From: Caecitellus pseudoparvulus
Taxonomy: Eukaryota; Protista; Bigyra: Bicosoecida
Assembly (NCBI GenBank): GCA_965644315.1
Contig: CBFFRQ010000050.1
Coordinates: 62,001 to 126,000, forward strand
Direction of reading: 5' to 3'
DNA: 64,000 nt
The position numbers were made by a program, and so were the translations under genes. Shown in pieces: positions 4,715 to 23,952 of this stretch. Each line of letters begins with the position of its first letter. Position 1 is the first letter of the stretch. The notes under the pieces are model-generated. The model did not search any database, was not told the origin of the DNA, and saw nothing but the letters and a program-made list of their open reading frames with translations.

Positions 4715-7700
4715 TCAGTCACTATCACTATCGAATCGAGTACGGCGCCTTCCCTTGGCCCCTATGTTTCGGAAGGCCCGGCGCACCGTCACTTGCGTCC
4801 CCAGGTCGCCACACAGCAGGCGGAACAGCGCCGCCGACAGCGCACCCACAAACAGTATGTTCAGCGCGAAGATGAGCACAGTCACAAAGGCTTTGGCGGC
4901 AGGGGTGGAGTCAGGGTCGATGAGCGTGGAGCCGCCATTCAGCGTCACCATGGTGACGACGATGGACGCGTTCTCAAAATGGTTCAGCACATGGCTGCGG
5001 TAGGGCAGTGCAGCGTTGTGCAGGAGGGACGCAATGACCATGAGGGTCGTGCCCGCAGTGGTCTGCACGCCGATGCCGGAGGGCCGCAGCAGCACCCCCA
5101 CGAAGGCCAGCCCCACCTTGCGCATCTGCACGACGATTTCCCAGTAGTACCGCTCCTCTCGGAAGGAGGAGAAGAGGAACCCCAACACCGCGCGGGTCTC
5201 CGGCTCACGCAGGCGGTGCCGACTGCAGAACAGGGCGGTGCCTGTCGCGCCAGACACGCCGAAGCCGTACACGACCAGGGCGGCGATGCCCACGCCGTAC
5301 ATCCAGCCATGGTTGCTGCTGTCGTCACAGTCGAACTGCAAGTCACCCACCAGCATGCTGCGGCCAGACACTGTGGTGCACGTGAACATGGACAGGGCGG
5401 TGCGGGTCAGGCTCAGCTGGAAGACGAAGAAGACGACGATGATGGAGACTTTGAAGCACTTCCAGGGGGTCATGATGACTGGCTTGGCCGTGAGCACGCT
5501 GCCCGGCGCGTGGCTCGGCTTCACGCTGCGCTTGGACCGCGCCAGCGACCCCATGCGGTTGGCACGGGCCCGGCTGGTGATGGGGCGTGCCTGCTCCGCC
5601 ACGGTGGGCGTTGCCGCCTTGCCTTCCGCCGCCTGCTCTGCGGGGTCCAGGCACACGCCATGCAGGCGCTTGGGCTGCGACGACGGCGTGGGGGCGTCCG
5701 TGACCACCTTGGGTGTCGCGGCGGCCTGCCTGGCTGCCTCCAGCAGTGCCTTGTCCTCACTGGTGTGGAACATGGGGTTGGCTGCCACGCCAGCCAAGCG
5801 TGCGTCGTCAAACGCGCCCTCTGCCGCCTCTCCCACAGGCCGCCCAGCAGTCGGCGACACAATGATGCGCTGCTCCGCCGATTTCAAGTGCGCAGCAGCC
5901 TTCGGAGCATAGCCATTCACAGCGACCAGTGGGTCGTCCGGGCGTGCAGAGCCGCCGTACCACAGGGCAATGCGTGCCCCCTCCGCCAACGTCCACACAA
6001 TCACCACCATGAACACGGCAGCGATGGGCAGCAGCAGCTGCACGATGCCATTCCCCAAGAATGTGCTGGTGAGGTCGTACCCCAGGCAGTCGATGCTGAG
6101 CAGCGCCTCGCCAACGTTGGACGACGCGTCAAACAGCGCGAACATCGCCTCCAGCGATGCCGGCCACTGCATGGGGAAAGCAGATGCCAGCGCCACCTGC
6201 TGCAAGTGCACCAGCATGAGCTTGGCCAGGGCCACGTGGGGCTTGGTCGTCGCACCTCGTGACCTCAGGGCTGTGCGGATGAGGAAGCTGATCATGAGCA
6301 CGCCCGTGAAGAAGCCCCCCACGAAGGCCAGGCGCACCAGGTGGATGGGGCCGCATGGCACACACAGGCCGTCCACCTGTGGCGAGAAGCCAAACTCACA
6401 GTTCCCACACAGCGGCCCCTCATACCCCGTCGCGCACTCTTGGTGGATGGCAGCTGTGGAGGCGCTGCTGAAGGCCCCCCGTGGCACGGTGCTGTTCCCG
6501 CCTCGCGTGTCCATGAACACGGCTGCACCGCTGGGGCACGCCTCGTCCAGCCTGCACCGCTCGAAGTGCAAGCCGTCAGGGCTCCACGGCACGCGGAAGT
6601 ACCCCCTCACATTGCTCAGCGCCTCCCACGTGTCTCCACCGCACACCGCTCCCTCGGGGCACTTCTTGCACACAGCCTGCGCCCATTCCCCACGTGCAGC
6701 GTGCTGGGTCGCCAGGTACTCGTCACGGTCGCACTTGGCGTACACTGGGCCGATGACATGGGAGACGGGGCCAGACGTCGCATTGCGTCGCTGGGCGTCT
6801 GTGACGCCATACACCCGCATCCAGAACGGCTGTGAGGGCGTGTTCAGCACGCGCACAATGAGGCGCTGGCCACCGCTGCTGCTCTGCAATGCACGCGCCT
6901 GACTCGTGCTGTTGCCACCGCTGCCTGCCCTGCCACATGCAACTGACGTCGTGGCGGCGTACACGACATCATCGCTCTCCACGTTGCGCAGGATGCGGGT
7001 CTGGACATCCGACGCCCCCACAACGCCGTCAAACCAAGGCTGCGTCGTGAACTGCACCACCCACTCCTGCACTGGGAACGACAGGGTGATTTCGTCGTCA
7101 GCCCAGGAGAACTCCACACGAGCGATGCCATCAGTGGCGTCACGGAACCCGCACAGCTCCACAGGCGCTGTCACAGGGGGCAGAGGGTCCTTGTCGTATG
7201 CAAAGGTGTTCTCAGGGGCACTCTCACTGCGCCACCCTCCCGCCGTCTCCACGCGCACCGGCAGCCCGGCGATGTCCTGCACAGCCTCGCTCAACGGGGC
7301 GGGCACCCGCACCGACAGGGAGATGGGGCCTGCCCACGACACGTCAGCTGCAGGCACCTGCACAGGACCCACCCACACGCCCGTCACCTCCTCAGCTGCC
7401 CAGCCAAAGTTCCGACCTGCGAGGGACAGCGTGTCCCCTGCCCGAGCCTTGCCCGGGGAGATGCTGCTCACGGCCGGCGGCCCCATGATGCGCAGCTCCC
7501 CCAGCTGAGAAGGCACAGACAAGCCCTCGTTCGTGATGGCCACGACGCGTGACGCCTCTGAGGCCGCCCCCACCTCTCGAGGCAGCAGGGCAGCCTGCAC
7601 GCCAGTGCAGATCATCTGGCGGGCATCAGGCGCAAGGGTCAGCGTGCCCTGCAAGGCAACGCAGTTGCTGCCTGCCAGCAGCATGCGGCCAGGGGAAGGG

Positions 7701-10700
7701 AGGGCTGGATCCCCCAGCGCCAAGCCGACGACCGTGATGTTGTACGTGTTCCCGAAGCCAGGCGGGGAATGCAGCAAGTTGCTGGGGCGTACCAGGAACA
7801 CTGCAGGCTCCACGTACGACACAACCCCCGGCGGCGACACACCCACCAGCCCCACTGCCGTCGTCACTCGCACGACGACTCGGTCAGCATCGGACAGGCT
7901 GTCTTGCAGCGATGGCGCCTGGCACCGCAAGCGGGTTGCCGACACCAGCACAACATTCGTGCAGGCGGCTGCTCCCAGCGCCACGCCAATGACATCCCCC
8001 TGCGCCTCACCAAAGCCCGAACCGAAAATCTGCACAGTGGTCCCACCTGCCGCACTGATGAGGGATGGCAGCGCTGATGACACGCCTGGGTGTCCGTACA
8101 CACGCAGTTGCAGGCCAGTCACTGCCTGCACGCCCGACACCACCAGCTGCACCTCCGCACGACTGTCCAGACTCACATTCCCCAACGCCACACCCCGACA
8201 CCACACCAACGTGTCGTTCACATACTCGACATGCCCACATGGCACCCCGCCCACGCTGCCCTGCATGGCCCCCACAGGGCCCGCCGCAAACGACACACCA
8301 AACCCCTCACCCAACAACGCCACATCCAGCACAGCACTCGCAGATGCAGGCGCCAACACGTACCGCGGCGAGATGGACTGCACACGAGCCGCCGCATACT
8401 GCAACGCAGCGTCCACATACTGCACACTCCACCCCCCCGCACGCTGCAGGGTCACAGGACTCAGCAGCCCCGTCCCACTGGGCACGTCGCACTCCAGCCG
8501 CGTGTCGGACAGCACCTGGATGTCGGTGCAGGGCAGGGAGTCAGGCCCCAGGGCGATGCCCAGGATGTCCCCCGAGCGTGGGGCGCCGTACTGCCCATCA
8601 GCACGCCCGAAGCCATCCCCCACCAGCTGCACACGGGCACCGTACACTGGGACAGTGCTGGGCTGCACACCGAACACCACAGGCTGCCCGAACACGTGCA
8701 CCGTCGCAGTGCGGGTGCTGTATGGCGCGCCTGCCACACTCACCAGCACCTCAGCACGCGCATCTGCCTGGAGCTGGCTGCTGTTCAAGCCGACACAGTC
8801 CACTTGCTCAGGCGAGACGTACGCCCACGATGCACAGGGCAAGCCAGCAATGGAGCCTGTGATGGCCCCATCTGCCGTAGGCGCAGCGATGGACCCGAAG
8901 TCTGCCCCGAACAGAGACACGCGGGGCACCAAGGCCGCCCCCCCCACAGCGCGAAGCAGATACACCGGCGACACACCCGTCACATTTCCAGCAGCATACT
9001 CCAGCGCCGCACTGGCCAAGCTGGCGTTCCAACCGCCGTCACGGTGCACGACGACAGGCGACAGACTGCCCACACCAGCAGGCACAGTGCAAGAAGCGCG
9101 GGTGGAGGAGATGGCCCGCACACTGGTGCACGCCACCCCACCCACCGTCACAGCGGTGATGTCCCCTGCTGCTCCAGCCCCCCACTGCCCCTCTGCACGG
9201 CCAAAGTTCAGGCCATCCATGGACACAGTGCCGCCTCCCACTGGCACAGGCACCCCTGCCACAGTGAACACCTGCATGCTGCCGAACAGGCGCACGGACG
9301 CAGGCAACTCTGCTACTGCGCCTGCCACCTCCACCGACACCCCCACCTGCACAGTGCTGGGCGGCAGGGAGGCGGTGTCCAGGCCCTCACACCGCACCTC
9401 CGCACCAGACACCCAGACGACCTGCGGGCAAGCCACACCTCCGACCCACACCGCCACGTCCCCAGCGCTTCGACCCAGAGCCGAGCCGTGCAGTGTCACA
9501 CTGGCATTCACCATGCCGGCTGCAGGAGACAGCACGATGAAGCTTGGATCCACAGACGTCAGCGCGGGCGTCGCGTACCGCAGCTGCACAGCATTGCTGA
9601 CCTGGTCTGCCACCCGCACACGCAGAGTGCGGGAGCCGTACCCTGGCGGCAAACTGCAGGAAGCAGAGGACGTGCTCACGTGTGACAACCCAGCGCACAG
9701 CCCCTCCACACCATCCACCAGCACAGCGATGCCCACCTCAGCAACAAGGCCAGTGCCCGTGGCATTGTCGCGTGGCAGGCCAAAGTCAGCGCCTTGGAGA
9801 GCCACGGTGCCGCCGAAGATGCTCATGCCGCTTTCAGGGACCAGGGCCAGCAAAGTTGGTGCCCGGTATCGGAAGGTAGTGGAGGAGGTCCAGGGGTTGG
9901 GCAGGGTGGGGATGGTGTGGTGAATGCGCAGCGGGAAGGCGCTGTGGGTGGAGTTTGACAGCGGGGGAATCGAGCAGGATAGCTGGGTTGCTGCTTTTTC
10001 GATAAGTGGGAATGCGCATACGCCCCCATCGATAGTCACCAAATTGCTTCCATTGTTAAACAACTCGAGCGCCCAGAAGGTGCCAGTGAAGCTCATGAAG
10101 CTGCTGCCTTGTGGGCTCAAGGAGGCTCCGCCTGGGCCTGTGACTGACGTGACTCTCAACAACACGTCGTCTGCTGCTGCTGGACTTCCTTCCTCTGGCC
10201 ACACGCAGGTGTCACTCCATGGCCCTGCCTCAAGCGTATCCAAACTGGCTGCCTCACAAGCTGATCCAAAGGAAAAAGGAATGTACGGAACCGTTGAAAC
10301 GAACGAGTGGTGCACACGCTTCGCCAACCAGCGAGGGATCGAGATCGTGGAGAGGAAGCTGCAGTCGTAGCAGTTCAAGTGCGTTATGGGAGACATCACT
10401 GGCGCGACACCGTGGAATGTAAACTCTGGCGAAAAAGCTCGAACCGTCGACGAGCGAGCCATCTGCAGAATGTTCCGATGTAGGGCTACGCTGTGATTCC
10501 CGATGGCTAGATCTACGCCAAGTCTATCTGTGAAGCCTGTCCCCAAGCCCCAGGAGGCGCGGCCCCAGCAGACAACTTCCCCCGTTTCCAGCAGCGCGCA
10601 AAGATGGGAGTCTCTGCACTTTACTTGAAGGGCGGGCGCAGGAAGCTGCACAGGGCCTGCGTCCACGGGGTCGTGGGTGTGTCCAATCTTCACTCCAGTC

Positions 10701-13700
10701 TCGAAGTACCCGAACTCAAGGTCGTGCCTTCCCCACGCCATCACCCCCCCACTCTCGGTCACAATGCATACACTGTACTCTCCGGCATCTAATCCCAGTA
10801 CTTTTTCTCCGATAGGCACTTTGCTTGCACTCGGCAAGGGAACATCGTTCGCAGCTTTCGCTGCAAGCGAGCCACACTCCCCACCGCCACAGGAGCCCCA
10901 GCAGTACAAATCTCCGTCTGCTTGGAGGAAGCAGCCTGTCCGGCGGCTGATGGTCACAGCAACAACAGGTGATGGCCTCGAAATCGGCGCGAGACTCGAG
11001 ATGGGGTCCGCCGTGGAAAGGCTGCTTCCGATTGTGCCCGAGGCGTGGACCTTGTCTGCGCGACCAAGCAGGAAATCGTCATTCCGCCCCCAACACAACA
11101 GCTCCCCGGCCACTGAAATCGCGCAAGAGTTGATCCGGCCAGCAAACACAGCAACGGCGGGCATGCCAAGGTCTAAGGGCCCAACAGATGCGGGTGTCTC
11201 ATCGTCGCCCACGTTGAAGTTGAAACCCGTCCTTGCATGCCAGTTGCGACCCCAGCACCTGACTCTCGCATGCACGTCCACACCACAAATATGCAACAAG
11301 CCTGCAGAAAGCGAGACGAGATCAGCACCAACATCGACGTCTCCAACCTCAGTCAAAGGTTTGTCATAACGCGAAATCTCATCGGTGTGCCCGTACCCGC
11401 ATTCTCCTGAGTTCTGCTTGCCTGAGCACCGCACCTTGCCAGACGACGTTAAGAAGGCTGAAAAAGTACTTCCTAGAGCGATCCCACTGACTCTGTCGCC
11501 GATGATGGACGAGTCAGCATAGAAGGCCGGTTCGGACCTGCCCAAAGCAGCAAAGCGAACTATTCCAGCCGAACCGTCTGAGCCCCGGCCCCAGCACAGA
11601 ACAGCACCGTCGATGCGCACGGCGCAAGAAAGATCTTGACCAACATCAACTTCGACAACACCTTGTGCCAACCAAGGGGCTCTCGTCAGGCTTGCAGGTA
11701 CACTGCGTCGCGCGACAGCTGAAGGCGGCGCGCAGGATGTCACCACCTGGTCCACAACGGAACAGTCAGCAACACACTCATCAACAGTTGCTTCCAGAGA
11801 TATTGCCCCCACGCGTTCCCAAGGGACTGAGGCTGTCCGATCTGCGATGGCTTCGCCTCGTGACGAGCGTCCGCCAACGCCCCAGCACTCAATGCGGCCA
11901 GAAGCAGACAGAGCACAGCCACTCTTGTGCGCCGCCGCAAAGTCTGTGAAAAAGCTGTCTGATGAAATGGGCACCACTGCAGGCATGTCAACCCGCATAG
12001 TGTCGTGCCGTATCCCAAGCCGACGGGACCGCGGAGTCCCCATACACCGAACCTGCCCTGACACTCCAAGAACACACCAATTCTCCCGTGAAACGTCAAC
12101 TTTGACCATCGGCTCTGGCATGATGAACTGGAAGGGGTCGATTTCTGCCCCCGGTGGCGAGTCTTGCCCAATGTCTGTGCCACGGAAAGGCTCTGGGTAG
12201 AAATTGCTGCCTCGATGTCCGAAGCACCCCACCGCTCCAGACAGAAAGAGAAGGCAAACGTTGCGCCTGTGAACCATAGTAGATACAGCAGCGACTTGAT
12301 TTGAGTTCCCCCCTAGATCAACTGGAGATAAAGCGCTGACAGGCTCGTGCCTTCCAAGCTCAGCATCCGTGTCAATGCCTGCGCCGATTCCTCCATCGCG
12401 GTTCCAGCCCCAGCAGAGGAGAGTGTGCTGGATCGTGACAGCACATCTTCCCTCTGAGAGTGAAGCGAAGTCAATTATGGTTGCGTTGGTTGGAATAAGG
12501 GACAAGGTGTCGGTATTCAGGACGTCCCGCGGCGAATCAGAGCCGAAGCCGAACCACCCCGAGGATCTCGTGTTCTGCCCGAAGCAGAATAGGTTCTCAC
12601 CAGGGCGGCCGGTCACCACGCAGGTTGAATGCCGACCACAAGCGACCTTGAGAACCTTTGGGTTCCCAAACTCCAGCTGAACTTCGGGAATGAGGTGAAG
12701 GTCGGATCTTATGTCAGTGCGGTCAGCACCTTGGCCCAAAGCAAGTTGCTCGCCCTCCCCCCAACATACGACGCGACCTGAATCAAACAAGGAACATACA
12801 TGTGTGAGTCCTGCCGAAACTTGAACGACCTTTCCTGCCAAAGGCACAAACCCTGCCTGAGCAGGGGTCACAGTTAGGCCAACACCGCCAACACCTGTGC
12901 CAAGCGTGTTATCCCGGTCCTGTCCCCAGCACTGGAGCTCACCCGTGTTGTAGATCGCACACACCATAATGAAGCCACTGCTGTACAGGCGAACTGGCCG
13001 CCTTGCGCACTGCGCGGAGCGGCGCCCCGCCTCAGGCCACAGACCCCACCCTCCCACGCCACCCACCACCTCGCCCACACCCACCACCTCCGCAAACGGC
13101 ACCAGACCCGCCCCACACACACCCGCCCCACACAAACCATCACGATCCACCCACGGTGATGTCTGGTTACCACCCACCACCACCCGCTGCCCCCGCACCC
13201 GGCTGATCACGCGGCTGTGCCGCAGCGCACCCTGATGCACGTACACACTCACGGTGGCGTTGGTCACGGGCGCTGCCCAGCCATCCTGCCACTGCGTTGC
13301 CTGGCCAGTACCCCCCAGCACGTCATACCAGTGCGACGGGTGCCCGCTCGCGAAGCCCGCGTGGAAGAACTCGCTGCTGTTGCGCCACCCGGCGCCATCC
13401 CACACCCACGGCTCAGCACGAACATGCGGCCCGGGCGAGGGCAGCCACGGAAACACCACCTCCACCCGCAGGGCCACATTGGCTGGACTGCTCAAGGTGG
13501 GACCAGGCCCCGCGTACATGCCTGGGGGCGGCGTGGTGGAGTTGTGGGGCAGGGCGGGCAAGCCATCTGGACCACCAGCTGCCAGGATGGCGTGCTTCCA
13601 GAGGGAGACGGTGTCGAGGGCGTCCCAGGGAATGTCGGCAAGCCACCACCATGAGGCAGTGTATGATGTGACTGAGGAGTTGGTGCCACGCTGGGCTGGA

Positions 13701-14017
13701 GGCCACAAGCGAGTGGAGTAGTTCTTGTGTGCCTGGACTGAGAGGTTGCTTGCGACCTCAAGCTCTGGCTCCACGCCTTGAAACGATAGCTGACTGTCCC
13801 AGCGGAGAAAGCGCTCTTCCGCGGAAAACTGGACTTCCTCCAAGTACACACTGTATGTGCTGGAGCTGGTGGCGACAAGCATGCTCGGTGAAAGCGTGCA
13901 AGGCCCTGGCAATGCTGCTGACGTTGCCGGGAAGGACGGAGAGTGAAACTTCGCAGCAGCTTGCTGCGTAGGCATGCCAATGGCAAGAAGCAAAGCAAGA
14001 ACCAAGAACATCGCCAT
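4715..14017 (-). CDS. Giant RCC1-propeller / IPT-TIG / FN3-like / Cys-rich multi-TM receptor, paralog A
   Basis: 3143-aa ORF. Likely start 14017 (MAMFLVLALLLAIGMPTQQAAA signal peptide). Repeated RCC1 motifs (C.L...G.V.CWG), IPT motifs (G..FG...V.VGGV.C), CATGYEGPLCGNC, and a TM region with KLMLVHLQQ and GFLFSSFREERYYWEIV..RK typical of protist adhesion-GPCR-like/TRP_C-like proteins. Confidence 0.9.
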   Translation of the reverse strand: MAMFLVLALLLAIGMPTQQAAAKFHSPSFPATSAALPGPCTLSPSMLVATSSSTYSVYLEEVQFSAEERFLRWDSQLSFQGVEPELEVASNLSVQAHKNYSTRLWPPAQRGTNSSVTSYTASWWWLADIPWDALDTVSLWKHAILAAGGPDGLPALPHNSTTPPPGMYAGPGPTLSSPANVALRVEVVFPWLPSPGPHVRAEPWVWDGAGWRNSSEFFHAGFASGHPSHWYDVLGGTGQATQWQDGWAAPVTNATVSVYVHQGALRHSRVISRVRGQRVVVGGNQTSPWVDRDGLCGAGVCGAGLVPFAEVVGVGEVVGGVGGWGLWPEAGRRSAQCARRPVRLYSSGFIMVCAIYNTGELQCWGQDRDNTLGTGVGGVGLTVTPAQAGFVPLAGKVVQVSAGLTHVCSLFDSGRVVCWGEGEQLALGQGADRTDIRSDLHLIPEVQLEFGNPKVLKVACGRHSTCVVTGRPGENLFCFGQNTRSSGWFGFGSDSPRDVLNTDTLSLIPTNATIIDFASLSEGRCAVTIQHTLLCWGWNRDGGIGAGIDTDAELGRHEPVSALSPVDLGGNSNQVAAVSTMVHRRNVCLLFLSGAVGCFGHRGSNFYPEPFRGTDIGQDSPPGAEIDPFQFIMPEPMVKVDVSRENWCVLGVSGQVRCMGTPRSRRLGIRHDTMRVDMPAVVPISSDSFFTDFAAAHKSGCALSASGRIECWGVGGRSSRGEAIADRTASVPWERVGAISLEATVDECVADCSVVDQVVTSCAPPSAVARRSVPASLTRAPWLAQGVVEVDVGQDLSCAVRIDGAVLCWGRGSDGSAGIVRFAALGRSEPAFYADSSIIGDRVSGIALGSTFSAFLTSSGKVRCSGKQNSGECGYGHTDEISRYDKPLTEVGDVDVGADLVSLSAGLLHICGVDVHARVRCWGRNWHARTGFNFNVGDDETPASVGPLDLGMPAVAVFAGRINSCAISVAGELLCWGRNDDFLLGRADKVHASGTIGSSLSTADPISSLAPISRPSPVVAVTISRRTGCFLQADGDLYCWGSCGGGECGSLAAKAANDVPLPSASKVPIGEKVLGLDAGEYSVCIVTESGGVMAWGRHDLEFGYFETGVKIGHTHDPVDAGPVQLPAPALQVKCRDSHLCALLETGEVVCWGRASWGLGTGFTDRLGVDLAIGNHSVALHRNILQMARSSTVRAFSPEFTFHGVAPVMSPITHLNCYDCSFLSTISIPRWLAKRVHHSFVSTVPYIPFSFGSACEAASLDTLEAGPWSDTCVWPEEGSPAAADDVLLRVTSVTGPGGASLSPQGSSFMSFTGTFWALELFNNGSNLVTIDGGVCAFPLIEKAATQLSCSIPPLSNSTHSAFPLRIHHTIPTLPNPWTSSTTFRYRAPTLLALVPESGMSIFGGTVALQGADFGLPRDNATGTGLVAEVGIAVLVDGVEGLCAGLSHVSTSSASCSLPPGYGSRTLRVRVADQVSNAVQLRYATPALTSVDPSFIVLSPAAGMVNASVTLHGSALGRSAGDVAVWVGGVACPQVVWVSGAEVRCEGLDTASLPPSTVQVGVSVEVAGAVAELPASVRLFGSMQVFTVAGVPVPVGGGTVSMDGLNFGRAEGQWGAGAAGDITAVTVGGVACTSVRAISSTRASCTVPAGVGSLSPVVVHRDGGWNASLASAALEYAAGNVTGVSPVYLLRAVGGAALVPRVSLFGADFGSIAAPTADGAITGSIAGLPCASWAYVSPEQVDCVGLNSSQLQADARAEVLVSVAGAPYSTRTATVHVFGQPVVFGVQPSTVPVYGARVQLVGDGFGRADGQYGAPRSGDILGIALGPDSLPCTDIQVLSDTRLECDVPSGTGLLSPVTLQRAGGWSVQYVDAALQYAAARVQSISPRYVLAPASASAVLDVALLGEGFGVSFAAGPVGAMQGSVGGVPCGHVEYVNDTLVWCRGVALGNVSLDSRAEVQLVVSGVQAVTGLQLRVYGHPGVSSALPSLISAAGGTTVQIFGSGFGEAQGDVIGVALGAAACTNVVLVSATRLRCQAPSLQDSLSDADRVVVRVTTAVGLVGVSPPGVVSYVEPAVFLVRPSNLLHSPPGFGNTYNITVVGLALGDPALPSPGRMLLAGSNCVALQGTLTLAPDARQMICTGVQAALLPREVGAASEASRVVAITNEGLSVPSQLGELRIMGPPAVSSISPGKARAGDTLSLAGRNFGWAAEEVTGVWVGPVQVPAADVSWAGPISLSVRVPAPLSEAVQDIAGLPVRVETAGGWRSESAPENTFAYDKDPLPPVTAPVELCGFRDATDGIARVEFSWADDEITLSFPVQEWVVQFTTQPWFDGVVGASDVQTRILRNVESDDVVYAATTSVACGRAGSGGNSTSQARALQSSSGGQRLIVRVLNTPSQPFWMRVYGVTDAQRRNATSGPVSHVIGPVYAKCDRDEYLATQHAARGEWAQAVCKKCPEGAVCGGDTWEALSNVRGYFRVPWSPDGLHFERCRLDEACPSGAAVFMDTRGGNSTVPRGAFSSASTAAIHQECATGYEGPLCGNCEFGFSPQVDGLCVPCGPIHLVRLAFVGGFFTGVLMISFLIRTALRSRGATTKPHVALAKLMLVHLQQVALASAFPMQWPASLEAMFALFDASSNVGEALLSIDCLGYDLTSTFLGNGIVQLLLPIAAVFMVVIVWTLAEGARIALWYGGSARPDDPLVAVNGYAPKAAAHLKSAEQRIIVSPTAGRPVGEAAEGAFDDARLAGVAANPMFHTSEDKALLEAARQAAATPKVVTDAPTPSSQPKRLHGVCLDPAEQAAEGKAATPTVAEQARPITSRARANRMGSLARSKRSVKPSHAPGSVLTAKPVIMTPWKCFKVSIIVVFFVFQLSLTRTALSMFTCTTVSGRSMLVGDLQFDCDDSSNHGWMYGVGIAALVVYGFGVSGATGTALFCSRHRLREPETRAVLGFLFSSFREERYYWEIVVQMRKVGLAFVGVLLRPSGIGVQTTAGTTLMVIASLLHNAALPYRSHVLNHFENASIVVTMVTLNGGSTLIDPDSTPAAKAFVTVLIFALNILFVGALSAALFRLLCGDLGTQVTVRRAFRNIGAKGRRRTRFDSDSD
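4754..9913. repeat. Outer inverted-repeat arm (5,160 bp), partner 18769-23928
   Basis: Both end pairs give the coordinate sum 28682, so there is no net indel. The encoded 1720 aa (IPTLPNPW...RNIGAK) differ at only about 15 residues between A and B. Confidence 0.95.
13007..13672. repeat. Inner inverted-repeat arm (666 bp), partner 14962-15627
   Basis: Encodes VTSYTASWWW...EAGRRSAQC in both A and B, with one residue difference seen (Q/H). Coordinate sum is 28634 at both ends. Confidence 0.95.
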
Positions 14018-14625
14018 GTCTCTTCGGCCCCTGGACTGCTGCCCCACCAGCAAGGGCACACGGCGAAGCCTTGAGCCACCCACGGGAGCAGCGGAAGGGA
14101 AGCTCACCGGAGCTGATGCAACACACGGCCAAGGCCCGGCATTCAATGCGCGCCAAACTCGAATTGCACGCCCAGAGGCAGCTGAACGAGCAAATAATTC
14201 ACGCTACGTTTGGTCTTTCCGTGGCGTCCCCGAGTCTGCAGGGGGTGGCGCCGCTTTTTGCAGAGTGCTCAGCAACCTGTGGCGCTCCCTCACGCACCCC
14301 CCCTCGAGCTGAGCCTGAGCCCCCCTCCAAGTGTGTGCCAGCCTTCCGCTCTTTCCGGGCACTGGAAAAAGTGAAACAAGCCCAGTCGCGCATCCCTCCG
14401 AGCGAGGTACCTTGGGGACGCAACGATATATTGTACACATACTTGCTACCACCTCTGCAAGAGTCCCCACGAAACCCAACCTCGCTTGAGCTGCTCATTG
14501 AGAACCCGAAATCGAGAGCCGTGCTGCGCGGCAGCTCGCTGGGCGAACGTTCCATTGACGGACCCTGGCCAGGCTCCGCTCTGGGGATCAGTTGGAGAGC
14601 AAGGGGGCCATTGCTTGATTTTCAT
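14018..14625. promoter_or_regulatory. Putative bidirectional promoter between divergent receptor genes A and B
   Basis: ~608-bp unique spacer between the two inferred signal-peptide start codons. Positional inference only. Confidence 0.5.
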
Positions 14626-17600
14626 ATGCGACCAGCCTTCGTTTTCGGGCTGGCGCTCTTGCTGGCGTGCTCGCCATGTCGAGGGAGCTACCAGGCACTG
14701 CACTTGCGACGCTCGCACCCGCCTTCAACTGCAGTGAGGCTCCCTTGCGGCGTTCGCGTTGCTGAGAGGACAGACGGGCTTCAAGTGGACTTGGAAGAGG
14801 CAACCTTTAGGTCAGAGCCGCGCCTCCTGCGCTGGGACTTCCAACTCAGCGCCCGAGGAGTTCCTGAGCACCTCGTCGCAGTGGCCAGCCGTGCCAGCAC
14901 CAACTTTGCGAACAACGCATCGCTCCGCACGCCACCAGTGGAGCTTGGGGATGCGACAAACGTCACATCATACACTGCCTCATGGTGGTGGCTTGCCGAC
15001 ATTCCCTGGGACGCCCTCGACACCGTCTCCCTCTGGAAGCACGCCATCCTGGCAGCTGGTGGTCCAGATGGCTTGCCCGCCCTGCCCCACAACTCCACCA
15101 CGCCGCCCCCAGGCATGTACGCGGGGCCTGGTCCCACCTTGAGCAGTCCCGCCAATGTGGCCCTGCGGGTGGAGGTGGTGTTTCCGTGGCTGCCCTCGCC
15201 CGGGCCGCATGTTCGTGCTGAGCCGTGGGTGTGGGACGGCGCCGGGTGGCGCAACAGCAGCGAGTTCTTCCACGCGGGCTTCGCGAGCGGGCACCCGTCG
15301 CACTGGTACGACGTGCTGGGGGGCACTGGCCAGGCAACGCAGTGGCAGGATGGCTGGGCAGCGCCCGTGACCAACGCCACTGTGAGTGTGTACGTGCACC
15401 ATGGCGCGCTGCGGCACAGCCGCGTGATCAGCCGGGTGCGGGGGCAGCGGGTGGTGGTGGGTGGTAACCAGACATCACCGTGGGTGGATCGTGATGGTTT
15501 GTGTGGGGCGGGTGTGTGTGGGGCGGGTCTGGTGCCGTTTGCAGAGGTGGTGGGTGTGGGCGAGGTGGTGGGTGGCGTGGGAGGGTGGGGTCTGTGGCCT
15601 GAGGCGGGGCGCCGATCCGCACAGTGCAGTGAGCGAGTGGTGATGATTCGCGCAACGTCTTTGCATACATGTGCTCTCAGTAACCAGCATCGGCTCTGGT
15701 GCTGGGGCTACGGCTCGCACGGTATGCTCGGGTACGGAAGTGATGCTGGCGTCGGGGTGTCGGACGATGTGGCGGCTGCTGGTCCAGTCCCGGTTGGGGG
15801 AGCAGTTGCTAGCGTGTTTTTGGGTCCATACACATCTTGTGTTGTTCTCTCGTCAGGGCGTGCCAAGTGCTGGGGGTATGGCGCGCACATGCAGCTTGGA
15901 CAAGGCACATACGCCCAGTCAATTGGCGTGACTGACCTTCCATCTGACTGGCCGCCAATCGAGCTCCCGCACGGCAATCCCCAGGTTTTTGCGGGCGCAG
16001 CAGCGTACATTTCAACGTGTCTCCTTACAGTGCGGCCTGGCAACAACCTCTTCTGCTTTGGCCATAGCACGTCATCTTGGGGCTTCATCGGCACTTTTCC
16101 AGACACGTCCGCGTACATCCCCAACACGTCAAATAGCAGTCTTGTTGACACAGGTGGAGTTTCGGTCGTCGACTTTGGCATTGGCCCGCGGCATCGATGT
16201 GCAGTGTTGGCTTCCGGGCACTTGCGGTGCTGGGGGGATAACTTGCATGGAGCTGCTGGACTTGGTCTTGGGGAAAGCGCTGTCATTGGCGACGATGAGA
16301 GCATCCTCAGCGTTCCAGTGGTTGATTTGGGAAGCTACTCTGACAGAGTCGTTGCCGTGTCCATTGAGCCGCAAGAGTACCTGACGTGTGTTACGTACGA
16401 CGACGGGAACTTTGCTTGCTGGGGGGCTTCCATCACTCTTGGCGGCCATGCACGCATGCCACAGGGGTTTGCAGGAATTGGTGATGACGAAACACCTGGA
16501 AATGCGTCAGATCCGTTTGTCTTTCCGTCCCAGTTGCCCATGGCGCGTGCGATTGCCGGGCGCTATCGCTGGTGCGGACTGTTCAGCAATGGGCAGCTGA
16601 AGTGCTCTGGAATCCAGCACGGGTTCTACGACGGGCACCGAGACGGGATTGGATCAGCATCTGCAAGCCCGGACAGTTTGGTACCAGTGGCGACGGATGA
16701 CTTTGTTGTGGATGCAGCATTGAATGCCTGGGGCGGATGCATCCTCACAGCAACGGGGAGTGTGGACTGCTATGGGTCCATTGCCGAGGCGGCAGGTGTG
16801 AACGTAAAATCATTTGTTCCGCAGGCGGCTTGGTACTACTCTGGCTCGGTCGTTTTGGATGTAAACATGTCCCAGTGCACCGCACGCTGTCTGACAGAGG
16901 AGGGCATCGTTCGCGACTGCCTCGTCGATTCAAACACTGCGAGGCTGTCGCAAGCAGTGGCTGTCTCCGAGGCCTCCCTTGCGCTGCAAGCAGCAACGCA
17001 ACAGGCAGTGGTGGACGTTTCGCTTTCCGTGATTGCAGCCTGTGCGGTGCTCATTTCTGGCGATGTCAAGTGCTGGGGGACCTATGCGGCCGGGCAAGGC
17101 GCGATTCCTGCCGCCGTCAACTTGCAGCAAACTGAGCCAGTGTACACGGGTAGCTTCGGACAAACTGGGGGCCGCACAGTCGCAGCTGCCGGAGGCTTCT
17201 ACTCCATGTGCTTCCTGCTTTCAACAGGTGGCCTTCGGTGTGGGGGGCTGGATCTGCTTGGCTCATCTGGCTATGGTGGTGGAATCGTGTACTACAGCCA
17301 CCTTGGGCCATCTCTTGCCGAAGCGGGGGACATTGATGTCGGTGAGCCCCTGCTGTCAGTGTCGTCAGCATTTTATACACGGTGTGGCATCACGGTCAGC
17401 CGACAAGTGCGGTGTTGGGGCTACGGCTTTTATGGCAGTTTGGGACTTCCTGGTGTGACTATCTCTGGCTACCTCACTCCGCCCTCATCCACTCCAAGTG
17501 TGAGCACTGGCATCCCTGATCCAGTGCACATATCTTGCCAGCACGCGACTTGTGCGGTCATTTCCAGCAGAGGTACGTTCCGTGTTTGGGGGTACAATGG

Positions 17601-20600
17601 AGGTTTCCTGTTGGGAACCTCTCAAGGCACTGTGACCGGCCCCGGTATTTCAGGACCCATGCTGGGAAACAACGAACACCCCCACTTGGCTCCTGAAGTC
17701 AGCTTGAGCCACCCGGTCCTCGACATACAAGTAGGCGTGAATGTCATGTGTGCCCTAGTCTCAAACGGGTCAGTTGTTTGTTGGGGGGTCTGTGGCGCGG
17801 GAAATTGCGGAGTGCCCGGCCGCACCGGCGCACAGGCGCTGCCAAGCATGCCGTTTGTGGATATTGGGGAGGCAGCGATTAGTGTGGCCGTCGGCGATGC
17901 CAAAGCTTGTGCTGTAGGGGTGTCGGGAGCTGTGTTTTGCTGGGGATCACCGTCAGCAGTGCTGGGTTATGGCGACCAGGAGAAGGTCGGCGGCTCGGTG
18001 CATCCGTCCACGAAAGGTGGGTTGGACTTGGGGGGTGCGAGCGCAGTCAGTGTGCACATGTACTCCAGAACTCGAACCACTTGTGCTAGGCTGAAAGACG
18101 GCGGTGTCGCATGCTGGGGTCCATCTTCCCCTGCTCTTGGCTCTGGGAAGAGTGGGCCAGTCGGAGCAAGTGCCCCAGTCGGTCTGACCCGCGTGCTTCC
18201 CCTGCGAAACGAGCTGCAGATTGCGAGGTACACCGATGTCCGAGCCTTCTCACCTAAGTTCTCCCTGAGCGGGGTCCCAGAACTGATGCCAGCGATCGCC
18301 CGATTGCGGTGCCAAGACTGCGATGGGCTACGCTTTCACGCGATACCCGCCTGGCTGCAAGATCTCATGCATCCTTCCATGGCAGTTGACTTGTTGTACG
18401 CTCCATACTTTCAGGGTGCGGCGTGCATCCGGCTGGGCTTGACAACAAAGCGAGTCGGCCCATGGTCTTCAGCGTGCACATGGCCTGAGGCAGAAAGCAG
18501 TGCAGCTGCTGACGGAACATTGCTTAACCTGACAGATGTCTCTGCTGGACTGCTGCCTGGCTTGCCAGCCGCGGGAGCTGGCTTTGTGACGGTGCACGGT
18601 ACATTCTGGGCCTTGGGTCTCTTTGACAAAGAGCAGACGGCTTTGTTTATTGGACAACACGAATGTTCAAGCTTGGTAATTTTTCCAGGGGCTCGAACCT
18701 TGGGGTGCACGCTTCCACCCCTAAGCAATGCCACCAGCTCTTTTGCTCAAGCGACCGTGTACCACAGTATCCCTACCCTGCCCAACCCCTGGACCTCCTC
18801 CACTACCTTCCGATACCGAGCACCAACTTTGCTGGCCCTGGTCCCTGAAAGCGGCATGAGCATCTTCGGCGGCACCGTGGCTCTCCAAGGCGCTGACTTT
18901 GGCCTGCCACACGACAATGCCACAGGCACTGGCCTTGTTGCTGAGGTGGGCATCGCTGTGCTGGTGGATGGTGTGGAGGGGCTGTGCGCTGGGTTGTCAC
19001 ACGTGAGCACTTCCTCTGCTTCCTGCAGTCTGCCGCCCGGGTACGGCTCCCGCACTCTGCGTGTGCGGGTGGCGGACCAGGTCAGCAATGCTGTGCAGCT
19101 GCGGTACGCGACGCCCGCGCTGACGTCGGTGGACCCAAGCTTCATCGTGCTGTCCCCTGCTGCGGGCATGGTGAATGCCAGCGTGACGCTGCACGGCTCG
19201 GCTCTGGGTCGAAGCGCCGGGGATGTGGCGGTGTGGGTCGGAGGTGTGGCTTGTCCGCAGGTCATGTGGGTGTCTGGTGCGGAGGTGCGGTGTGAGGGCC
19301 TGGACACCGCCTCCTTACCGCCCAGCACCGTGCAGGTGGGGGTGTCAGTGGAGGTGGCAGGCGCAGTAGCAGAGTTGCCTGCGTCCGTGCGCCTGTTCGG
19401 CAGCATGCAGGTGTTCACTGTGGCAGGGGTGCCTGTGCCAGTGGGAGGCGGCACTGTGTCCATGGATGGCCTGAACTTTGGCCGTGCAGAGGGGCAGTGG
19501 GGGGCTGGAGCTGCTGGGGACATCGCCGCTGTGACGGTGGGTGGGGTGGCGTGCACTGGTGTGCGGGCCATCTCCTCCACCCGCGCTTCTTGCACTGTGC
19601 CTGCTGGTGTGGGCAGTCTGTCGCCTGTCGTCGTGCATCGTGACGGTGGTTGGAACGCCAGCTTGGCCAGTGCGGCGCTGGAGTATGCTGCTGGGAATGT
19701 GACGGGTGTGTCGCCGGTGTATCTGCTTCGCGCTGTGGGGGGGGCGGCCTTGGTGCCCCGCGTGTCTCTGTTCGGGGCAGACTTCGGGTCCATCGCTGCG
19801 CCGACGGCAAATGCGGCCATCACAGGCTCCATTGCTGGCTTGCCCTGTGCATCATGGGCGTACGTCTCGCCTGAGCAAGTGGACTGTGTCGGCTTGAACA
19901 GCAGCCAGCTCCAGGCAGATGCGCGTGCTGAGGTGCTGGTGAGTGTGGCAGGCGCGCCATACAGCACCCGCACTGCGACGGTGCACGTGTTCGGGCAGCC
20001 TGTGGTGTTCAGCGTGCAGCCCAGCACCGTCCCAGTGCACGGTGCCCGTGTGCAGCTGGTGGGGGATGGCTTCGGGCGTGCTGATGGGCAGTACGGCGCC
20101 CCACGCTCAGGGGACATCCTGGGCATCGCCCTGGGGCCTGACTCCCTGCCCTGCACCGACATCCAGGTGCTGTCCGACACGCGGCTGGAGTGCGACGTGC
20201 CCAGTGGGACGGGGCTGCTGAGTCCTGTGACCCTGCAGCGTGCGGGGGGGTGGAGTGTGCAGTATGTGGACGCTGCGTTGCAGTATGCGGCGGCTCGTGT
20301 GCAGTCCATCTCGCCGCGGTACGTGTTGGCGCCTGCATCTGCGAGTGCTGTGCTGGATGTGGCGTTGTTGGGTGAGGGGTTTGGTGTGTCGTTTGCGGCG
20401 GGTCCTGTGGGGGCCATGCAGGGCAGCGTGGGTGGGGTGCCGTGTGGGCATGTCGAGTACGTGAACGACACGGTGGTGTGGTGTCGGGGTGTGGCGTTGG
20501 GGAATGTGAGTCTGGACAGTCGTGCGGAGGTGCAGCTGGTGGTGTCGGGCGTGCAGGCTGTGACTGGCCTGCAACTGCGTGTGTACGGACACCCGGGCGT

Positions 20601-23600
20601 GTCATCAGCGCTGCCGTCCCTCATCAGTGCGGCAGGTGGGACCACTGTGCAGATTTTCGGTTCGGGCTTTGGTGAGGCGCAGGGGGATGTCATTGGCGTG
20701 GCGCTGGGAGCAGCCGCCTGCACGAATGTTGTGCTGGTGTCGGCAACCCGACTACGGTGCCAGGCGCCATCGCTGCAAGACAGCCTGTCCGATGCTGACC
20801 GAGTCGTCGTGCGAGTGACGACGGCAGTGGGGCTGGTGGGTGTGTCGCCGCCGGGGGTTGTGTCGTACGTGGAGCCTGCAGTGTTCCTGGTGCGCCCCAG
20901 CAACTTGCTGCATTCCCCGCCTGGCTTCGGGAACACGTACAACATCACGGTCGTCGGCTTGGCGCTGGGGGATCCAGCCCTCCCTTCCCCTGGCCGCATG
21001 CTGCTGGCTGGCAGCAACTGCGTTGCCTTGCAGGGCACGCTGACCCTTGCGCCTGATGCCCGCCAGATGACCTGCACTGGCGTGCAGGCTGCCCTGCTGC
21101 CTCGAGAGGTGGGGGCGGCCTCAGAGGCGTCACGCGTCGTGGCCATCACGAACGAGGGCTTGTCTGTGCCTTCCCAGCTGGGGGAGCTGCGCATCATGGG
21201 GCCGCCGGCCGTGAGCAGCATCTCCCCGGGCAAGGCTCGGGCAGGGGACACGCTGTCCCTCGCAGGTCGGAACTTTGGCTGGGCAGCTGAGGAGGTGACG
21301 GGCGTGTGGGTGGGTCCTGTGCAGGTGCCTGCAGCTGACGTGTCGTGGGCAGGCCCCATCTCCCTGTCAGTGCGGGTGCCCGCCCCGTTGAGTGAGGCTG
21401 TGCAAGACATCGCCGGACTGCCGGTGCGCGTGGAGACGGCGGGAGGGTGGCGCAGTGAGAGTGCCCCTGAGAACACCTTTGCGTACGACAAGGACCCTCT
21501 GCCCCCTGTGACAGCGCCTGTGGAGCTGTGCGGGTTCCGTGACGCCACTGATGGCATCGCTCGTGTGGAGTTCTCCTGGGCTGACGACGAAATCACCCTG
21601 TCGTTCCCAGTGCAGGAGTGGGTGGTGCAGTTCACGACGCAGCCTTGGTTTGACGGCGTTGTGGGGGCGTCGGATGTCCAGACCCGCATCCTGCGCAACG
21701 TGGAGAGCGATGATGTCGTGTACGCCGCCACGGCGTCAGCTGCATGTGGCAGGGCAGGCAGCAGTGGCAACAGCACGAGTCAGGCGCGTGCATTGCAGAG
21801 CAGCAGCGGTGGCCAGCGCCTCATTGTGCGTGTGCTGAACACGCCCTCACAGCCGTTCTGGATGCGGGTGTATGGCGTCACAGACGCCCAGCGGCGCAAT
21901 GCGACGTCTGGCCCCGTCTCCCATGTCATCGGCCCAGTGTACGCCAAGTGCGACCGTGACGAGTACCTGGCGACCCAGCACGCTGCACGTGGGGAATGGG
22001 CGCAGGCTGTGTGCAAGAAGTGCCCCGAGGGAGCGGTGTGTGGTGGAGACACGTGGGAGGCGCTGAGCAATGTGAGGGGGTACTTCCGCGTGCCGTGGAG
22101 CCCTGACGGCTTGCACTTCGAGCGGTGCAGGCTGGACGAGGCGTGCCCCAGCGGGGCGGCCGTGTTCATGGACACGCGAGGCGGGAACGGCACCGTGCCA
22201 CGGGGGGCCTTCAGCAGCGCCTCCACAGCTGCCATCCACCAGGAGTGCGCGACGGGGTATGAGGGGCCGCTGTGTGGGAACTGTGAGTTTGGCTTCTCGC
22301 CACAGGTGGACGGCCTGTGTGTGCCGTGCGGCCCCATCCACCTCGTGCGCTTGGCCTTTGTGGGGGGTTTCTTCACGGGCGTGCTCATGATCAGCTTCCT
22401 CATCCGCACAGCCCTGAGGTCACGAGGTGCGACGACCAAGCCCCACGTGGCCCTGGCCAAGCTCATGCTGGTGCACTTGCAGCAGGTGGCGCTGGCATCT
22501 GCTTTCCCCATGCAGTGGCCGGCATCGCTGGAGGCGATGTTCGCGCTGTTTGACGCGTCGTCCAACGTTGGCGAGGCGCTGCTCAGCATCGACTGCCTGG
22601 GGTACGACCTCACCAGCACATTCTTGGGGAACGGCATCGTGCAGCTGCTGCTGCCCATCGCTGCCGTGTTCATGGTGGTGATTGTGTGGACGCTGGCGGA
22701 GGGGGCACGCATTGCCCTGTGGTACGGCGGCTCTGCGCGCCCGGACGACCCACTGGTCGCTGTGAACGGCTATGCCCCGAAGGCTGCTGCGCACTTGAAA
22801 TCGGCGGAGCAGCGCATCATTGTGTCGCCGACTGCTGGGCGGCCTGTGGCAGAGGCGGCAGAGGGCGCGTTTGACGACGCACGCTTGGCTGGCGTGGCAG
22901 CCAACCCCATGTTCCACACCAGTGAGGACAAGGCGCTGCTGGAGGCAGCCAGGCAGGCCGCCGCGACACCCAAGGTGGTCACGGACGCCCCCACGCCGTC
23001 GTCGCAGCCCAAGCGCCTGCATGGCGTGTGCCTGGACCCCGCAGAGCAGGCGGCGGAAGGCAAGGCGGCAACGCCCACCGTGGCGGAGCAGGCACGCCCC
23101 ATCACCAGCCGGGCCCGCGCCAACCGCATGGGGTCGCTGGCGCGGTCCAAGCGCAGCGTGAAGCCGAGCCACGCGCCGGGCAGCGTGCTCACGGCCAAGC
23201 CAGTCATCATGACCCCCTGGAAGTGCTTCAAAGTCTCCATCATTGTCGTCTTCTTCGTCTTCCAGCTGAGCCTGACCCGCACCGCCCTGTCCATGTTCAC
23301 GTGCACCACAGTGTCTGGCCGCAGCATGCTGGTGGGTGACTTGCAGTTCGACTGCGACGACAGCAGCAACCATGGCTGGATGTACGGCGTGGGCATCGCC
23401 GCCCTGGTCGTGTACGGCTTCGGCGTGTCTGGCGCGACAGGCACCGCCCTGTTCTGCAGTCGGCACCGCCTGCGTGAGCCGGAGACCCGCGCGGTGTTGG
23501 GGTTCCTCTTCTCCTCCTTCCGAGAGGAGCGGTACTACTGGGAAATCGTCGTGCAGATGCGCAAGGTGGGGCTGGCCTTCGTGGGGGTGCTGCTGCGGCC

Positions 23601-23952
23601 CTCCGGCATCGGCGTGCAGACCACTGCGGGCACGACCCTCATGGTCATTGCGTCCCTCCTGCACAACGCTGCACTGCCCTACCGCAGCCATGTGCTGAAC
23701 CATTTTGAGAACGCGTCCATCGTCGTCACCATGGTGACGCTGAATGGCGGCTCCACGCTCATCGACCCTGACTCCACCCCTGCCGCCAAAGCCTTTGTGA
23801 CTGTGCTCATCTTCGCGCTGAACATACTGTTTGTGGGCGCGCTGTCGGCGGCGCTGTTCCGGCTGCTGTGTGGCGACCTGGGGACGCAAGTGACGGTGCG
23901 CCGGGCCTTCCGAAACATCGGGGCCAAGCGCAGAGGAGAGCAAATCAATTGA
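14626..23952 (+). CDS. Giant RCC1-propeller / IPT-TIG / multi-TM receptor, paralog B
   Basis: 3293-aa ORF 14071-23952. Likely start is the in-frame ATG at 14626 (MRPAFVFGLALLLACSPCRG signal peptide). Same domain order as A. Confidence 0.9.
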   Translation: MRPAFVFGLALLLACSPCRGSYQALHLRRSHPPSTAVRLPCGVRVAERTDGLQVDLEEATFRSEPRLLRWDFQLSARGVPEHLVAVASRASTNFANNASLRTPPVELGDATNVTSYTASWWWLADIPWDALDTVSLWKHAILAAGGPDGLPALPHNSTTPPPGMYAGPGPTLSSPANVALRVEVVFPWLPSPGPHVRAEPWVWDGAGWRNSSEFFHAGFASGHPSHWYDVLGGTGQATQWQDGWAAPVTNATVSVYVHHGALRHSRVISRVRGQRVVVGGNQTSPWVDRDGLCGAGVCGAGLVPFAEVVGVGEVVGGVGGWGLWPEAGRRSAQCSERVVMIRATSLHTCALSNQHRLWCWGYGSHGMLGYGSDAGVGVSDDVAAAGPVPVGGAVASVFLGPYTSCVVLSSGRAKCWGYGAHMQLGQGTYAQSIGVTDLPSDWPPIELPHGNPQVFAGAAAYISTCLLTVRPGNNLFCFGHSTSSWGFIGTFPDTSAYIPNTSNSSLVDTGGVSVVDFGIGPRHRCAVLASGHLRCWGDNLHGAAGLGLGESAVIGDDESILSVPVVDLGSYSDRVVAVSIEPQEYLTCVTYDDGNFACWGASITLGGHARMPQGFAGIGDDETPGNASDPFVFPSQLPMARAIAGRYRWCGLFSNGQLKCSGIQHGFYDGHRDGIGSASASPDSLVPVATDDFVVDAALNAWGGCILTATGSVDCYGSIAEAAGVNVKSFVPQAAWYYSGSVVLDVNMSQCTARCLTEEGIVRDCLVDSNTARLSQAVAVSEASLALQAATQQAVVDVSLSVIAACAVLISGDVKCWGTYAAGQGAIPAAVNLQQTEPVYTGSFGQTGGRTVAAAGGFYSMCFLLSTGGLRCGGLDLLGSSGYGGGIVYYSHLGPSLAEAGDIDVGEPLLSVSSAFYTRCGITVSRQVRCWGYGFYGSLGLPGVTISGYLTPPSSTPSVSTGIPDPVHISCQHATCAVISSRGTFRVWGYNGGFLLGTSQGTVTGPGISGPMLGNNEHPHLAPEVSLSHPVLDIQVGVNVMCALVSNGSVVCWGVCGAGNCGVPGRTGAQALPSMPFVDIGEAAISVAVGDAKACAVGVSGAVFCWGSPSAVLGYGDQEKVGGSVHPSTKGGLDLGGASAVSVHMYSRTRTTCARLKDGGVACWGPSSPALGSGKSGPVGASAPVGLTRVLPLRNELQIARYTDVRAFSPKFSLSGVPELMPAIARLRCQDCDGLRFHAIPAWLQDLMHPSMAVDLLYAPYFQGAACIRLGLTTKRVGPWSSACTWPEAESSAAADGTLLNLTDVSAGLLPGLPAAGAGFVTVHGTFWALGLFDKEQTALFIGQHECSSLVIFPGARTLGCTLPPLSNATSSFAQATVYHSIPTLPNPWTSSTTFRYRAPTLLALVPESGMSIFGGTVALQGADFGLPHDNATGTGLVAEVGIAVLVDGVEGLCAGLSHVSTSSASCSLPPGYGSRTLRVRVADQVSNAVQLRYATPALTSVDPSFIVLSPAAGMVNASVTLHGSALGRSAGDVAVWVGGVACPQVMWVSGAEVRCEGLDTASLPPSTVQVGVSVEVAGAVAELPASVRLFGSMQVFTVAGVPVPVGGGTVSMDGLNFGRAEGQWGAGAAGDIAAVTVGGVACTGVRAISSTRASCTVPAGVGSLSPVVVHRDGGWNASLASAALEYAAGNVTGVSPVYLLRAVGGAALVPRVSLFGADFGSIAAPTANAAITGSIAGLPCASWAYVSPEQVDCVGLNSSQLQADARAEVLVSVAGAPYSTRTATVHVFGQPVVFSVQPSTVPVHGARVQLVGDGFGRADGQYGAPRSGDILGIALGPDSLPCTDIQVLSDTRLECDVPSGTGLLSPVTLQRAGGWSVQYVDAALQYAAARVQSISPRYVLAPASASAVLDVALLGEGFGVSFAAGPVGAMQGSVGGVPCGHVEYVNDTVVWCRGVALGNVSLDSRAEVQLVVSGVQAVTGLQLRVYGHPGVSSALPSLISAAGGTTVQIFGSGFGEAQGDVIGVALGAAACTNVVLVSATRLRCQAPSLQDSLSDADRVVVRVTTAVGLVGVSPPGVVSYVEPAVFLVRPSNLLHSPPGFGNTYNITVVGLALGDPALPSPGRMLLAGSNCVALQGTLTLAPDARQMTCTGVQAALLPREVGAASEASRVVAITNEGLSVPSQLGELRIMGPPAVSSISPGKARAGDTLSLAGRNFGWAAEEVTGVWVGPVQVPAADVSWAGPISLSVRVPAPLSEAVQDIAGLPVRVETAGGWRSESAPENTFAYDKDPLPPVTAPVELCGFRDATDGIARVEFSWADDEITLSFPVQEWVVQFTTQPWFDGVVGASDVQTRILRNVESDDVVYAATASAACGRAGSSGNSTSQARALQSSSGGQRLIVRVLNTPSQPFWMRVYGVTDAQRRNATSGPVSHVIGPVYAKCDRDEYLATQHAARGEWAQAVCKKCPEGAVCGGDTWEALSNVRGYFRVPWSPDGLHFERCRLDEACPSGAAVFMDTRGGNGTVPRGAFSSASTAAIHQECATGYEGPLCGNCEFGFSPQVDGLCVPCGPIHLVRLAFVGGFFTGVLMISFLIRTALRSRGATTKPHVALAKLMLVHLQQVALASAFPMQWPASLEAMFALFDASSNVGEALLSIDCLGYDLTSTFLGNGIVQLLLPIAAVFMVVIVWTLAEGARIALWYGGSARPDDPLVAVNGYAPKAAAHLKSAEQRIIVSPTAGRPVAEAAEGAFDDARLAGVAANPMFHTSEDKALLEAARQAAATPKVVTDAPTPSSQPKRLHGVCLDPAEQAAEGKAATPTVAEQARPITSRARANRMGSLARSKRSVKPSHAPGSVLTAKPVIMTPWKCFKVSIIVVFFVFQLSLTRTALSMFTCTTVSGRSMLVGDLQFDCDDSSNHGWMYGVGIAALVVYGFGVSGATGTALFCSRHRLREPETRAVLGFLFSSFREERYYWEIVVQMRKVGLAFVGVLLRPSGIGVQTTAGTTLMVIASLLHNAALPYRSHVLNHFENASIVVTMVTLNGGSTLIDPDSTPAAKAFVTVLIFALNILFVGALSAALFRLLCGDLGTQVTVRRAFRNIGAKRRGEQIN
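14962..15627. repeat. Inner inverted-repeat arm, partner 13007-13672
   Basis: Near-identical reverse complement of 13007-13672. Confidence 0.95.
18769..23928. repeat. Outer inverted-repeat arm, partner 4754-9913
   Basis: Near-identical reverse complement of 4754-9913 with scattered substitutions. Confidence 0.95.

Follow-up and report, generated by a model that had tools for sequence, protein, structure and literature searches.

Homogenised chassis and divergent RCC1 heads in a head-to-head pair of predicted receptor genes of Caecitellus pseudoparvulus

Little is known about how free-living protists recognise their prey or partners. In the vlsE, pilE, VSG and lamprey VLR systems a variable segment lies between constant flanks, and a G4-type motif is found at pilE. 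A 64,000-nucleotide stretch of the genome of the bicosoecid Caecitellus pseudoparvulus (contig CBFFRQ010000050.1, positions 62,001 to 126,000; hereafter the window) contains two very long genes, A and B, which are near-identical in their N-terminal and stalk-to-membrane parts and highly divergent between them. The original prediction for this locus was of a family of swappable heads on a homogenised chassis, diversified as in the systems above. The question is whether A and B belong to a repertoire from which heads are drawn, or are two old genes whose common parts are kept alike.

A nested inverted repeat of two long genes

Gene A (4715..14017, minus strand) encodes 3100 aa from the likely start Met, the start codon and the leader being judged by eye, and is composed of a signal-peptide-like leader, an N-domain, two RCC1 propellers, an IPT stalk, a Cys-rich region and a multi-TM base. 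Gene B (14626..23952, plus strand; 3108 aa) has the same architecture and lies head-to-head with A. A third gene, C (25070..34459, minus strand; 3129 aa), is an older paralog of A/B and sits after B, tail-to-tail. Pfam detects RCC1 and IPT/TIG domains in all three genes; in B the whole-protein WD40_RLD score is below cut-off and RCC1_2 passes. The N-domain (13007-13879 in A) is Trp-rich and about 290 aa long; it is found in five genes of the genome and in two proteins of one relative, has no Pfam match, and its predicted structure reaches a pLDDT of 40. The membrane base shows four to five strong hydropathy peaks. The profile matches of the membrane and Cys-rich region (PF06011, DUF7630 and DUF7631) are all weak and below cut-off, and no PDB sequence match was found.

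Self-comparison of the window resolves the pair into two nested, inverted and gap-free arms. The outer arm, a converted tract from the IPT stalk to the membrane domain, covers 4754..9921 (minus strand) in A and 18761..23928 (plus strand) in B, with 98.2% identity; the inner arm, 222 aa that make up most of the N-domain, covers 13007..13672 (minus strand) in A and 14962..15627 (plus strand) in B, with 98.3% identity. Between the arms lie the segments that we call heads, at 9914..13006 (minus strand) in A and at 15628..18768 (plus strand) in B, whose proteins are 32-41% identical. The full open frames (4715-14146 on the minus strand for A, 14071-23952 on the plus strand for B) are each unbroken across all borders, so that the near-identical flanks, the divergent middle parts and the sharp in-frame borders of the original prediction are all confirmed.

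The RCC1 nature of both heads holds as well. The predicted structure of head A (pLDDT 66) contains 14 blades in two sets of seven and matches RCC1-fold structures with an E value of 5e-21 and target TM-scores of 0.7-0.77. The two seven-bladed propellers occupy about 10466-13006 in A, and the variable segment is more than propellers, because about 185 aa of linker and first IPT domain follow them. The outer border falls about 185 aa past the last blade, where the first IPT domain has nearly ended, and the inner border, in the head-A model, lies 4 residues ahead of the first propeller strand. Both borders are abrupt, with no shoulder within the head. Outside head and leader A and B are 99% identical. 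Divergence extends to their first ~115 aa and to their final 12-19 aa as well; the unconverted segments are therefore three (leader, head and tail) and not one. The centre of the locus (13673..14961, not assigned to a strand) holds the two divergent leaders, of about 115 aa each, and a 608-bp common upstream region (14018-14625).

Other features were seen elsewhere in the window. Tandem arrays with units of 27/54, 12/60/72 and 42 bp occupy 40772-45050, the 42-bp array lying in a 1722-aa frame without Pfam matches, and about five 99-bp tandem units (35645-36238) are found in a frame with an N-terminal NUP50 match. At 57474-59543 an APH and acyl-CoA dehydrogenase fusion is encoded, which recurs at 99% identity in two ENA metagenome assemblies (L044, L048); the next named matches of its dehydrogenase part are bacterial (62-65%).

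Age of the pair and its heads in other samples

The mismatches between the arms have the pattern of coding sequence. In the outer arm 71 of 93 fall at third codon positions, with 70 silent and 17 replacement codons, and in the inner arm all 11 are at third positions. An assembly or polishing collapse, the technical alternative named with the original prediction, would ignore codons, and the arms are thus no artefact; short-read data do merge the arms into one contig, as a collapse would suggest, and this contig is deeper in coverage than its flanks, with the same borders in two samples (X1 and X5). The probability left to a collapse is practically negligible. At fourfold sites the arms are 95-96% identical, that is, silent sites are homogenised as well as protein. 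The outer arm has a dS of 0.053 and a dN of 0.004 between A and B (arm dN overall 0.002-0.004), to be compared with a dS of 0.032-0.038 for alleles of neighbouring genes from other samples. Divergence is not constant within the arms: mismatch density is uneven (p=0.0007), and along the outer arm dS drops from 0.089 to 0.024. In the heads, instead, identity at fourfold sites is 19-22% vs 25-26% expected at random, and silent sites are saturated.

A related species carries a head-to-head pair, P0138 and P0139, which is not homogenised. P0138 is the single ortholog of A/B and is syntenic, A's downstream neighbours being common to both, and P0139 is the ortholog of C. The head tree, ((A,B),P0138,(C,P0139)), has a support of 94.8/90 and the same topology as the chassis tree; the second propeller alone leaves the tree unresolved. 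Head distances are 2.10 for A-B, 2.51 for A-P0138 and 2.11 for C-P0139, whereas arm distances are 0.00-0.02 for A-B vs 0.64-2.10 to P0138. Since the A-B head distance is near the ortholog distance and that of the arms near zero, the duplication is only slightly younger than the species split, and homogenisation of the arms came later. An old duplication, homogenised arms and sister heads are thus observed at this locus.

The same mosaic and head tree are predicted if A was duplicated recently and a head and a leader then entered one copy from an old sister gene that has since been lost. Such an import must place three foreign segments (leader, head and tail) in register, and it leaves unexplained the GC step in A itself, described below; we regard it as highly improbable. 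In the relative the head-to-head partners are the A/B ortholog and the C ortholog (L046 33-19210), and the arrangement must therefore have been reorganised when B arose. Searches revealed no other species that carries both A and B, the sole relative found having one A/B ortholog, and a metagenome scan gave one distant locus.

A programmed system, in which heads drawn from a donor pool are swapped rapidly between the constant arms, would account for the constant-variable-constant layout and for the decoupling of head and chassis at the level of the family (see below). Such a system predicts further cassettes, and the search of the 30.6-Mb genome, whose counts are lower bounds, found each arm twice and no third copy of either. 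The same lower-bound search returned no DNA match to either head elsewhere; the two heads match each other best, head B being the top genomic match of head A (383 bits; next 145 bits), and the nearest other heads are 29-31% identical in protein. No repeat is common to both head borders, the longest shared word being 6-9 nt, and the congruence of head and chassis trees also speaks against swapping.

Population samples point in the same direction. Short-read contigs of four runs from four studies were compared over 11350-17300, a span with the inner borders inside it and the outer borders outside; the labels of the runs point to a marine eukaryote. Three samples (X1, which may be the window's own strain, X5 and X8) span both inner borders with the same two heads, at about 0.7-3.7% from the window, and X12 provides fragments of the same heads. 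The inner-arm contig (14962-15614) is identical in extent in X1, X5 and X8; such a lone contig can come from bubble popping and says nothing on arm identity within the other strains. Among the 14 loose ends listed, of 16, no third head appears at the inner borders, rare variants and inversions being invisible in short-read contigs. No same-species allele of A, of B or of either head came up in homolog searches. Among the head-A SNPs listed (n=27), 24 are silent and 3 are replacements, against about 75% of sites that are replacement sites (p=6e-12 vs neutral). Head alleles are under purifying selection.

With only these copies, congruent trees and heads that are the same across samples, the locus largely presents the picture that the original prediction had set against its own cassette model, and programmed swapping at A/B is very improbable.

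Conversion, GC content and the wider family

A further signature of the arms is their base composition. Fourfold-site GC in A is 0.54 in the leader, 0.755 in the inner arm, 0.536 in the head and 0.764 in the outer arm (head vs outer arm, p=1.5e-21). In C it is 0.55-0.61, except in a 587-bp tract (28551..29137, minus strand), in register with and 96% identical to A/B (8118-8704 and 19978-20564), where it reaches 0.77. This rise above the rest of C identifies A/B as the donor of the tract. Its changes (about 5 A-only, 3 B-only and 2 C-only) fit C as outgroup, with no mixing of A and B types needed.

The membrane domain of A/B has at least 60 matches in the genome, about 19 of which have RCC1 matches in the same long frame; no description of this receptor family was found in the literature searched. 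The family includes a second head-to-head pair (G000:C40:294760-307188), with a 1687-bp tract of 97.6% identity (L021 1374-3060, L022 565-2251). Its proteins are 100% identical over about 500 aa of Cys-rich and membrane region and 29-36% identical upstream, the tail is divergent, and no RCC1 matches were seen. Here too fourfold-site GC steps, from 0.49/0.57 to 0.81/0.82. We take the rise in GC at the borders as a sign of prolonged, GC-biased conversion, bearing in mind that membrane domains of genes without a known partner range from 0.40 to 0.88 in fourfold-site GC, high values included. Conversion at A/B was very probably both recurrent and GC-biased.

The explanation that we consider probable for A and B is that the chassis evolves in concert and the heads stay distinct. 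An old inverted duplication would have produced A and B soon after the split from the P0138 lineage. Recurrent ectopic gene conversion between the inverted copies, each being repaired from the other, would then have homogenised the chassis from stalk to membrane and the greater part of the N-domain, and the two RCC1 propellers, together with the first IPT domain, would have stayed unconverted and diverged in place. Conversion tracts entering a head would be removed because two specificities are useful, and the diverged head itself may also block pairing. It is likely that selection maintains two different heads, and the expected outcome is two fixed specificities on one chassis and no switchable repertoire.

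Part of these data could also be produced by a neutral patchwork, in which A and B had fully diverged and a few recent long conversions overwrote two tracts, the heads being missed by chance or blocked by divergence, without selection. The abrupt borders count against concerted evolution, since a few recent overwrites give them equally, and so does the C tract, which entered a paralog of about 40% identity and indicates that conversion without long continuity is possible; moreover the outer border lies inside an IPT domain, away from the propeller end. GC steps that match the borders in both arms would not, however, arise from a single overwrite if the two genes had similar GC. The dS gradient along the outer arm indicates conversion events of several ages, the inner border is at a domain junction, and the chassis bias is repeated in the C40 pair. 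The patchwork is therefore rather unlikely.

G-quadruplex-type (G4) motifs are found near the borders. Three lie at 15434..15590 (plus strand; mirror 13044-13200), near the inner border, where they are largely expected from the Gly/Val-rich protein, and one, with weak enrichment, at 18771..18789 (minus strand; mirror 9893-9911), 2 bp from the outer border. All 11 canonical motifs of A, B and C fall in converted tracts, the closest to the inner border being at 37 bp. Synonymous resampling of their proximity gave p=0.57 for the inner border (as expected), p=0.077 for the outer and p=0.04 for both, with a post hoc range of 0.02-0.04. The C40 pair has no G4 at its borders. The placement signal is weak and may follow from the rise in GC.

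These motifs and the nested, in-frame inverted repeats are what an invertible switch would display. The centre is invertible in principle: crossing-over in the inner arms would flip its 1289 bp, swapping promoters and leaders, and crossing-over in the outer arms would swap the tails. All four isomers leave both frames intact, so that expression could be phase-varied. On the other side, each gene has its own leader and upstream space, no recombinase or short recombination site was identified, and the C40 borders are without G4. No inversion joint appears in the short-read contigs, which break at the arms and cannot show one. A switch of this type is improbable.

At the level of the family, head and membrane domain appear to follow different histories. 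For example, the head of the gene at C18:23459 scores against P0002 like that of C53 (507 and 506 bits, with a constant offset of 9478 in several matches), but its membrane domain belongs to another clade than C53's (18-45% identity by window). The gene at C18:953258 has a P0001-type head and lies outside P0001's membrane clade, and C76 combines an A/B/C-type N-domain and head with the C8/C64 clade. This decoupling of head types from membrane clades across a family of 60 or more members, seen in match tables and not in a family-wide head tree, suggests deep shuffling. Of the swappable heads originally proposed, the homogenised IPT/multi-TM chassis, the distinct RCC1 heads and the large family thus stand, with indirect evidence for deep shuffling, and switching at A/B does not. 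Quite unlikely, too, is a combination of the two levels, in which the nested repeats would be an active switch and hybrid generator, G4-initiated flipping exchanging promoters and leaders, and a fast head-exchanging family would form a heritable recognition repertoire.

Several other loci of the family have related patterns. Near-equal head match fingerprints occur at G000:C18:28538-30949, C53:19057-21471 and also C56:947-3358, with unrelated membrane clades, and are a candidate head transfer. Chassis 98% identical across contigs are found at G000:C20:~113800-120555 and C88:~5002-11652 (L030, L037), where the head matches differ in extent and score. At G000:C89:~780000-796400 the two genes of a tail-to-tail pair have stalk matches of equal length (792 nt; 53.8 and 54.2 bits) and differing membrane-domain scores, possibly a shared tract. 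A tandem triple at G000:C8:~63800-94900 (L026-L028), with a spacing of about 12 kb, has chassis of 92-98% with patchy identity; variable heads were rejected for this triple, whose heads are colinear and similar (scores 363-379). Small contigs with short frames (G000:C149, C199, C67; C28, C107, C114, C163, C187, C138) fall into groups whose match fingerprints are almost the same; they are duplicates, haplotigs or broken copies.

Comparison with known systems

The pair shares with vlsE, pilE, VSG and VLR a variable segment between constant flanks, and G4-type motifs lie nearby as at pilE, though with the weak placement signal given above. It differs from them in that no donor archive was found in the genome search, no clonal or strain variation was seen in the samples compared, and its heads are under purifying selection. 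The heads share the RCC1-like propeller fold of UVR8, the HERC2 RLD and RPGR; those propellers are intracellular, whereas the propellers of A and B are in tandem and predicted to be extracellular.

In alveolates, CRMPs combine a large ectodomain, a Cys-rich module and a C-terminal multi-TM domain, and have been proposed to be contact sensors (PMC9670195). A and B resemble them, as a functional analogy, in this layout, and differ in the heads, which in CRMPs are MAR, Kringle or EGFR-like. Any homology with CRMPs would rest on the below-cut-off profile matches given above. From architecture, an extracellular head on a long stalk would bind and the multi-TM base would signal. By analogy with CRMPs and adhesion GPCRs, we lean slightly towards heads that bind extracellular ligands (surfaces of prey, substrate or partner) and signal via the shared membrane domain. 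The pair singles out the RCC1 double propeller as the predicted determinant of specificity in this large family, whose members are giant surface receptors. As natural chimeras with 99% identity beyond head and leader, A and B offer a ready-made controlled test of head binding.

A converted pair with distinct heads has precedents in avian TLR2A/TLR2B and mammalian TLR1/TLR6 (PMC3125219). As in the TLR2A/TLR2B type, paralogs are closer than orthologs in the converted regions and an old divergence is kept in the unconverted region. Unlike these TLR pairs, with which they are not homologous, A and B have RCC1 propellers carried by an IPT stalk over a multi-TM base, lie in inverted orientation and are saturated at silent sites in the heads. 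In the peak-of-divergence model (red/green opsins, RHD/RHCE), a stretch that diverges strongly within converted surroundings is read as selection to maintain two functions (PMC3924837); A and B differ from these cases in that their peak is 3.1 kb long with abrupt edges. The process is already known, and A and B are a clean protist case of it, in which a GC signature, an ortholog from an outgroup and population samples come together.
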